Shown in pieces: positions 13,608 through 13,837 of a stretch of DNA of 64,000 nucleotides. Where the stretch lies: assembly GCF_030144855.1 (NCBI RefSeq), contig NC_082732.1, forward strand, positions 23,498,001 through 23,562,000, written 5' to 3'. The notes beneath the pieces were generated by a model. That model ran no database searches, was not told the origin of the DNA, and was given only the letters and a program-made list of their open reading frames with translations. The first letter of the stretch is position 1, and every line of letters starts with the position of its first letter. Source of the DNA: Hypanus sabinus (lineage: Eukaryota). The translations under genes were made by a program, and so were the position numbers.

Positions 13608-13668
13608 CTGGACTGTGATCATCTTCAAGGGCAGCAAAAGTGCAACATGCATCAGTGAGGCCGGCGTC
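13608..13668 (-). CDS. DDI2: DDI2 exon 9, 61-nt exon containing the stop codon (GRRPH*, CDS 13652-13668)
   Basis: U-rich tract, then CTAACAG|GACGCCGGCCTCACTGA; donor CAG|GTATTT at 13608; comparable to the short ERQKP* end of human DDI2 as recalled. Confidence 0.85.
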
Positions 13669-13837
13669 CTGTTAGGATAAAAAAAACACAAAACCAAACC
13701 ACAACAGCAAACTCGATTAGTCAACTGAAGCATGCAGCATGCACACAGAATTACAGGTCACTACAGATATCGAACAGATTAATATTCCATACAAACATAA
13801 CTTGGCATTAGCATGCACTATAATAATAGCCATTAGT
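13646..13837 (-). promoter_or_regulatory. Splicing-regulatory cluster: 4x RBFOX (TGCATG) and 2x QKI/branch-type (ACTAAT)
   Basis: CATGCA on + at 13646, 13731, 13738, 13812; ATTAGT at 13716 and 13832. Confidence 0.65.

Follow-up and report, generated by a model that had tools for sequence, protein, structure and literature searches.

What decides whether the DDI2 gene of a jawed vertebrate yields a short protein or a long one with a UBA domain at its end? The DDI2 protease activates NRF1 (NFE2L1) in the proteasome bounce-back response, and it is described in vertebrates as a UBA-less protein whose UBA domain was lost to, or captured by, RSC1A1, an account that does not discuss a splice choice (Sivá et al. 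2016, PMC4962041). We approached the question through a 64,000-nucleotide (nt) stretch of the Atlantic stingray Hypanus sabinus (NC_082732.1, positions 23,498,001 to 23,562,000), which we call the window. It is the stingray DDI2 locus, because the open reading frame (ORF) of the last DDI2 exon (8724-10664) is 100% identical to the NCBI entry 'protein DDI1 homolog 2 isoform X1 [Hypanus sabinus]'; the gene lies on the minus strand, on which all its features and motifs are read here. Exon 9 (13608-13668), 61 nt long and bearing the stop codon of the short protein, is the gate between short DDI2 and a long form that regains the UBA. Around its 3' splice site lies a cluster of UGCAUG and YUAAY motifs that is probably an ancient cis-regulatory module. 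The best-supported reading, to which we assign a probability of about 0.45, is that of an RBFOX-dependent silencer.

A motif cluster at the 3' splice site of exon 9

Exon 8 (14548-14737), the UIM-containing C-terminal coding exon, ends in phase 1 at GAATCTG/gtaagt. When exon 9 follows, the reading continues as G/GA CGC CGG CCT CAC TGA, or GRRPH-stop, and the short isoform ends in ...SAEESGRRPH-stop. When exon 9 is skipped, exon 8 joins exon 10 (8721-10664; acceptor ttttag/GAAAAG) as G/GA AAA GAA AAT and runs in frame into a 647-codon RSC1A1-like ORF. The C-terminus of that long form is a UBA domain (8763-8855; PF00627, 23.4 bits against a cutoff of 22.4), which also weakly matches the UBA structures of yeast Ddi1 (2mr9) and S. 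pombe Mud1. The original prediction, in which inclusion of exon 9 gives a short UBA-less protein and skipping an in-frame long protein ending in a UBA, was borne out by this gene model.

That prediction had also placed a dense set of RBFOX and QKI motifs here, and on rereading the sequence we found every one of its motif positions to be exact. TGCATG occurs on the sense strand at 13817-13812, 13743-13738, 13736-13731 and 13651-13646, that is, at -149, -75 and -68 from the acceptor and at +18 within exon 9, where the last copy stands directly 3' of the TGA stop (13654-13652). ACTAAT occurs at 13837-13832 and 13721-13716 and CTAAT at 13811-13807, and a CTAAC (13675-13671) abuts the acceptor AG (13670-13669). 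The stingray exon thus has (U)GCAUG both inside it and within the ~300 nt of flanking intron in which such motifs are looked for at RBFOX-regulated exons. The expectation of about 0.04 TGCATG per 172 nt was likewise correct, with a Poisson P of ~8e-8 for at least four in one such stretch, as was the absence of TGCATG from the downstream intron: intron 9 holds no sense-strand GCATG at all, and the four found between exon 8 and exon 10 (14547-10665, 3.9 kb) are all inside the 172-nt cluster. Counting both strands, the window has 30 TGCATG, fewer than the 52 expected from shuffling; 18 of the 30 are on the minus strand. Two of the four clustered copies form a 7-nt tandem duplication (TGCATGC TGCATGC) and therefore the cluster represents about three independent events, not four. 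Some hexamer reaches four copies per 172 nt at about six other places in the window; these dense clusters fall in a GATA microsatellite (48113-48192) and in runs of overlapping repeated hexamers at 50256-50366 and 36381-36587 that are apparently short tandem repeats. The region of the exon 9 cluster is neither a tandem nor a dispersed repeat, and Rfam returned no match at E <= 1 in 13000-14800. Motif density alone is suggestive; it is conservation that lifts the cluster above chance.

We compared eight jawed vertebrates: three rays (Hypanus sabinus, Pristis pectinata and Narcine bancroftii), the shark Heptranchias perlo, the chimaera Callorhinchus milii, the bowfin Amia ocellicauda, the zebra finch Taeniopygia guttata and the bat Phyllostomus hastatus. 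The last three stand for their lineages with one species each. All eight species have a GCATG at 59 to 75 nt from the acceptor on its upstream side, a short way 5' of a YUAAY branch-point candidate, together with a TGCATG at about position +18 of the exon. The five cartilaginous fishes have the tandem TGCATGCTGCATGC upstream (13731-13743 in the stingray) together with the exonic TGA-TGCATG, pair and exonic copy being identical in Pristis, Narcine, Heptranchias and Callorhinchus, while a single (T)GCATG occupies the same upstream place, again with the exonic copy, in the bowfin (TGCATG at about -66), the finch (GCATG at -61) and the bat (TGCATG at -62). At the exonic copy (13646-13651), TGATGCATG is invariant in 8/8 species and forms the longest invariant block of the alignment.

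A k-mer test that needs neither an alignment nor a presumed motif singled out the same elements. In the 100 nt upstream, the only 5-mers common to all eight species were GCATG and CCTAA/TCCTA; within exon 9 only pieces of TGATGCATG were common to them, and the 100 nt downstream yielded no 5-mer shared by all. A shuffle control on four lineage representatives gave a mean of 0.12 shared 5-mers and shared GCATG in 0/2000 shuffles. No GCATG was present within 300 nt downstream of exon 9 in any of the eight. Among the four elasmobranchs, 57 of the 61 exon positions are invariant. The block conserved between Hypanus and Heptranchias spans 516 nt around the exon, with far more flank than at other DDI2 exons, and the block conserved between Hypanus and Callorhinchus runs from precisely the first tandem TGCATG (13743) to 20 nt beyond exon 9.

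The predicted cluster is conserved in part: an upstream GCAUG at the place of the tandem pair and the exonic UGCAUG are kept in 8/8 species, whereas the distal TGCATG and the ACUAAY core are not. The distal copy (13817-13812), which with the CTAAT after it fills 13807-13817, is kept in Narcine and reads TGCATA in Pristis and CTCATA in Heptranchias. The distal ACTAAT (13832-13837) is shared by Hypanus and Pristis and becomes GCTAAT in Narcine and GCTAAC in Heptranchias. Judging from the alignment, this distal pair (13837-13807) probably stands outside the core module. In the finch, CGCAUGGUGUGUGC (L006, 17748-17765), and in the bat, UGCAUGCUGUGUGG (L007, 27159-27175), a GUGUG directly after the first (G)CAUG replaces the second tandem UGCAUG, and in both species the exonic UGCAUG is followed at once by a (UG)4-6 run.

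The YUAAY motifs fared differently. The ACTAAT at 13716-13721, at -53, is the probable branch point, and a YUAAY is found at -39 to -52 in 8/8 species. The upstream ACUAAY that would form a QKI core is limited to Hypanus, Pristis and Narcine, with GCUAAU, GUUAAU, GCUAAC or GUUAAC elsewhere, and the distance from the stingray core (13721-13716) to the nearest downstream half-site (13674-13671) is about 41 nt, against 1 to 20 nt in a canonical QKI response element; on both counts the QKI part of the prediction was not supported. From the branch point to the acceptor runs a GU/U-rich tract (13678-13712), free of AG between about -45 and the acceptor AG itself and with (A)GTTTG in 7/8 species. The conserved YUAAY at -39 to -52 and the AG-free tract after it have the look of a distant branch point. 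The TCCTAAC that abuts the acceptor AG (13671-13677) contains TCCTAA, the sole 6-mer common to 8/8 species in the upstream 100 nt; TCCTAA(C/T) lies 2 to 9 nt before the AG across the eight and is the best-conserved upstream element. It is not the branch point in cartilaginous fishes, because that would put the branch A at -4, too near the AG, and it is possibly a protein-binding element, a candidate STAR-protein half-site. The two YUAAY elements together could bind a STAR protein, and an equally good or better account of them is as signals of the branch point and the 3' splice site.

At its other end, exon 9 has a weak donor, CAG/GTATTT (13602-13607), without G at +5 and with GTATT in 7/8 species, in contrast to the strong CTG/GTAAGT of exon 8. 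The stop codon (13652-13654) lies 44 nt before this donor, and the distance is 43 to 46 nt in 8/8 species, below the 50 to 55 nt of the rule for nonsense-mediated decay (NMD). Such steady spacing suggests selection for a short mRNA that is immune to NMD despite a stop in the penultimate exon. Two other roles for the exon were considered and set aside. As a poison (NMD-inducing) exon it has its stop too near the junction, at less than 50 to 55 nt, and it encodes the canonical short C-terminus; as a composite terminal exon it is unlikely, since the first ~1.07 kb of intron 9 lacks both poly(A) hexamers, AATAAA and ATTAAA. An extra exon of 82 nt lies in intron 9 (12118-12037), bounded as ttag/GAAAAAAG...AAAG/gtgaat, 84% identical to Heptranchias (L002, 17397-17457) and used by the NCBI isoform X1 model of Hypanus. 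Downstream of an included exon 9 it would place the stop ~126 nt before the last junction, and so the transcript should be sensitive to NMD.

Skipping of exon 9 in annotations and experiments

Proteins that pass from exon 8 directly to exon 10 are annotated in sharks, a chimaera, bowfin, gar, sturgeons, teleosts, coelacanth and amphibians, and also in reptiles, birds, a monotreme, marsupials and placentals; the junctions were read in five proteins of the full set. The Bos taurus 'isoform 2' skips exon 9, and its name has no X prefix, suggesting a curated record. A long form of 914 amino acids (aa) was found on a Logan contig of 2.9 kb that has to derive from cDNA.

Experimental data on the orthologous exon come from work on TDP-43, in which a 62-nt exon of mouse Ddi2 was followed by reverse transcription-PCR (RT-PCR) with products of 284 and 222 bp (Carmen-Orozco et al. 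2024, PMC11163724). We assigned it as the orthologue of exon 9 from the forward primer, which translates to ECARLA of exon 8, and from its 62-nt size; the mouse primers did not map onto the bat locus at <=3 mismatches. In mouse spinal cord, the percent spliced in (PSI) was 100 and 96 in controls, 64 and 42 on overexpression of wild-type TDP-43, and 52 and 48 on overexpression of the G298S form (PMC11163724). In human neurons derived from induced pluripotent stem cells (iPSC; i3Neurons), control values of 86, 96 and 100 compare with 29, 13 and 60 on TDP-43 overexpression, and the exon is one of only two TDP-43 'skiptic' events common to mouse and human, the other being in SLC6A6 (PMC11163724). 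These data show that the orthologous exon can be repressed in vivo (PMC11163724), and the gene model gives the skiptic event a second reading, in which skipping does not destroy DDI2 and instead converts it to a UBA-bearing isoform.

The rest of the stingray gene was laid out with peptide anchors, which put exon 1 at ~27218-27081, exon 2 around 22759-22745 (anchor LKDGD), exon 3 at ~21563-21462, exon 4 at ~19812-19696, exon 5 at ~19331-19203, exon 6 at ~16971-16846 and exon 7 at ~15171-15148. Existing annotations of the locus are inconsistent. Among those of Pristis, Mobula, Narcine, Scyliorhinus and Cetorhinus, some split it into a DDI2 of ~410 to 426 aa and a separate 'uncharacterized protein' over the last exon. 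Others give fusion isoforms of ~1060 to 1090 aa, and the mammalian protein is named either DDI2 isoform X1 or RSC1A1 isoform X1.

A proposed RBFOX silencer and its competitors

An RBFOX-dependent silencer is best supported because the layout of the motifs, with copies upstream and in the exon and none downstream, matches that of calcitonin exon 4, F1-gamma exon 9 and CaV1.2 exon 9*. We know of no well-established reader of UGCAUG besides the RBFOX family, and the upstream and exonic motifs are probably a real RBFOX-type splicing element, to go by their conserved placement. We consider it quite likely that RBFOX binds the (U)GCAUG sites at exon 9. Nested within that estimate, a net effect of skipping stands somewhat short of an even chance, and that such skipping would make a marked tissue switch is rather unlikely. 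The conserved core comprises one or two (U)GCAUGs (13743-13731) 10 to 25 nt upstream of the YUAAY branch-point candidate, the UGCAUG at +18 (13651-13646) and, next to the acceptor, the UCCUAAY box (13677-13671). In the mechanism we propose, modelled on calcitonin exon 4, RBFOX beside the branch point would hinder recruitment of SF1 and U2, and RBFOX within exon 9 would hinder exon definition. Inclusion of exon 9 would then fall, and more of the long DDI2-UBA isoform would be made, wherever nuclear RBFOX activity was high enough.

Several points weigh against this proposal. Protein searches returned no exon-9-skipped isoform from Hypanus, and the only Hypanus model found to use the last exon, the 716-aa isoform X1, includes exon 9 and then the 82-nt exon at 12118-12037. 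That model begins at an ATG (13733) inside the second TGCATG and reads exon 9 in a frame other than that of DDI2; apparently it is an artefact of choosing the longest ORF in a transcript that really stops within exon 9. The original prediction had expected the long isoform to be enriched in muscle, heart, neurons and glia; for neurons and glia this goes against mammalian control inclusion of 96 to 100% in mouse spinal cord and 86 to 100% in human iPSC neurons, both of which we take to be rich in RBFOX and QKI. Such near-full inclusion speaks against any strong switch in neurons or glia, at least for mammals, in which one upstream UGCAUG remains and not two. A literature search brought up no paper that ties RBFOX or QKI to the DDI2 exon, only co-mentions in gene lists, and the event was absent from the portions of supplementary data available from RBFOX and QKI perturbation studies. 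Chondrichthyan sequence also evolves slowly, which makes identity within that group less informative than the comparisons with bowfin, finch and bat, and GCAUGC is self-complementary, so that conservation of two copies could serve RNA pairing.

Another use of the same sites would also accord with the mammalian inclusion values. The UGCAUGs could be RBFOX sites that work without a tissue switch, fine-tuning or safeguarding near-constitutive inclusion, or the exonic copy, which follows the stop at 0 nt and belongs to the 3' untranslated region (UTR) when exon 9 is included, could act in the short-isoform mRNA through cytoplasmic RBFOX control of stability or translation. Inclusion of 96 to 100% and 86 to 100% where RBFOX is presumably expressed speaks for this use, as does the failure of protein searches to return a skipped Hypanus isoform; but the upstream copies lie in the intron and could have no action in mature mRNA, and skipped isoforms are annotated in most vertebrate groups. 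Upstream plus exonic placement is, moreover, the classical arrangement for silencing (PMC2777236), and we think RBFOX action without a switch unlikely. Proteins that bind GU or UG (TDP-43, CELF or RBM24-type) might instead be the main regulators, acting on the GU-rich tract and the tetrapod exonic (UG)n with the UGCAUGs secondary. TDP-43 overexpression cuts inclusion of the orthologous exon to 42 to 64% in mouse and 13 to 60% in human neurons, a sensitivity that the tetrapod (UG) features would explain; the bat and finch have GUGUG beside the upstream GCAUG and (UG)4-6 after the exonic UGCAUG, and GTTTG and AGTTTG are common to 7/8 species. The TDP-43 effect, however, was seen on overexpression only, elasmobranch exon 9 has no UG repeat and its upstream tract no (UG) run of at least 4, and the elements invariant in 8/8 species are GCAUG and UCCUAA, not UG runs; we hold this account to be improbable. 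Competition between QKI and SF1 at branch points is an established mechanism, and QKI could be the principal repressor through the branch-point ACUAAU and the UAAC half-site at the acceptor. In its favor are the two YUAAY elements found in 8/8 species, at -39 to -52 and at -7 or -13, and the overlap of ACUAAU with the predicted branch point in rays. Against it, the full ACUAAY core is confined to the three rays, its first position being G/U in shark, chimaera, bowfin, finch and bat; the ~41 nt between core and half-site exceed the canonical 1 to 20 nt; and a YUAAY at -40 to -50 equals the plain branch-point consensus. Mouse spinal cord, presumably rich in QKI-expressing glia, includes the exon at 96 to 100%, and the partial supplementary data of QKI studies hold no Ddi2 event, leaving QKI a slim prospect as the main repressor. 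That the cluster is a functionless by-product of mutation, a 7-nt tandem duplication with two stray copies, would agree with the duplication itself, with the unconserved distal copy and with the other hexamer clusters in the window, but the upstream GCAUG and exonic UGCAUG are kept in position in eight species amid a diverged intron, and chance is very unlikely.

Pairing of the RNA is the remaining competitor. The palindromic GCAUG(C/U) blocks might pair with each other and loop out the branch point, pyrimidine tract and acceptor, with an additional pairing from intron 8 in elasmobranchs. RNAalifold does pair the second upstream copy (alignment columns 33-38) with the exonic copy (columns 126-131), and nearly all sequences retain the pairs through G.U. 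The consensus fold, however, is weak at -6.6 kcal/mol and has next to no compensatory changes; for the Hypanus region by itself, the predicted fold does not beat those of shuffled sequences (z = -0.29), and a helix of 6 to 7 bp closing a loop of ~80 nt is marginal. Any two copies of UGCAUG(C) pair automatically, moreover, so the prediction is not independent evidence. The additional pairing involves a box in intron 8 (14132-14145), complementary at 13 of 14 positions to the last 14 nt of exon 9. Its duplex with the exon tail reaches -21.3 kcal/mol in Hypanus and Pristis, a value that 0/60 shuffled tails equaled, and a similar duplex forms in Narcine and a weaker one in Heptranchias; none was found in chimaera, bowfin, finch or bat, which restricts the box to elasmobranchs. 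By this predicted pairing the exon 9 donor would possibly be masked. We judge RNA structure to be a distinctly unlikely basis for the conserved elements.

The intron-8 box sits in one of the few islands of intron 8 that can be aligned between ray and shark. Its RNA, CUGGACAGUGAUCAAAGAAAG (14145-14125), has two partners: the exon 9 tail (13621-13608), with 13/14 bp ending at the donor, and an intron element ~200 nt upstream of exon 9 (13883-13864), with 13/13 bp. The two pairings share a UGAUCA palindrome and are mutually exclusive.

If RBFOX does control a switch at exon 9, the ancestral shuttle-factor architecture would never have been lost in vertebrates; it would be expressed conditionally, in tissues or states of high RBFOX activity, and RSC1A1 would be largely the tail of a long DDI2 isoform. 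The broadest form of this claim, in which an RBFOX-controlled switch across the sampled jawed vertebrates sets UBA-less short DDI2 against a UBL-protease-UBA protein of ~1050 aa, we regard as doubtful. If the element is inactive, it is merely another conserved UGCAUG pair of unexplained use. Motif class, position rule and the fact that the exon can be skipped were already known; the link of a UGCAUG element to DDI2 exon 9, and its conservation in all sampled jawed vertebrates, appears to be unreported.

Comparison with known splicing switches

The TDP-43 skiptic exon of Ddi2/DDI2 is the same exon by orthology, and its skipping joins exon 8 to the RSC1A1-containing exon. The study that described it treats the exon as constitutive and attributes skipping to excess TDP-43 at UG motifs, with the UGCAUGs, RBFOX and the consequence for the UBA unmentioned (PMC11163724). 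The (UG)n run of that exon is a tetrapod feature, and the stingray exon does not have it. The likeness to a QKI response element comes from the rays, with an ACUAAU at the predicted branch point and a UAAC half-site at the acceptor, and it weakens beyond them: the core is not kept outside the rays, the spacing is ~41 nt and not 1 to 20 nt, and what is conserved equals the generic branch-point consensus. A further parallel, offered as a lead only, is the intron 4 element of C. elegans egl-15, UGCAUGGUGUGC, which is reported to be bound jointly by ASD-1/FOX-1 and SUP-12 for muscle-specific repression. The finch and bat also have GUGUG right after GCAUG, where the stingray has two UGCAUGs instead.

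Closer comparisons lie among exons repressed by RBFOX. F1-gamma (ATP5C1) exon 9 and CaV1.2 exon 9* are silenced through upstream GCAUGs, in CaV1.2 also through exonic ones, giving skipping in muscle or neurons, with more copies producing a stronger effect (PMC2777236). They share with DDI2 the several upstream (U)GCAUG copies. Both are in-frame coding cassettes, whereas DDI2 exon 9 is a 61-nt, frame-breaking stop exon that chooses the C-terminus.

The nearest counterpart is CALCA exon 4. There, according to the part of PMC2777236 that recounts the work of Zhou & Lou (2008), an intronic UGCAUG blocks SF1 (E' complex) and an exonic one blocks recruitment of U2AF65 (E complex). The two cases differ in several respects. 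Silencing of CALCA by Fox-1/Fox-2 is experimental, whereas the DDI2 element is a candidate from sequence; the CALCA sites stand at -34 and +45, against -75/-68 (other species: -59 to -66) and +18 in DDI2; and DDI2 exon 9 is internal, unlike CALCA exon 4, which is terminal and has a poly(A) site of its own. They are alike in their plan, with one UGCAUG beside the branch point in the upstream intron and one inside the exon (PMC2777236). In both genes the regulated exon holds the stop codon of one product, and its skipping leads to the other C-terminus.

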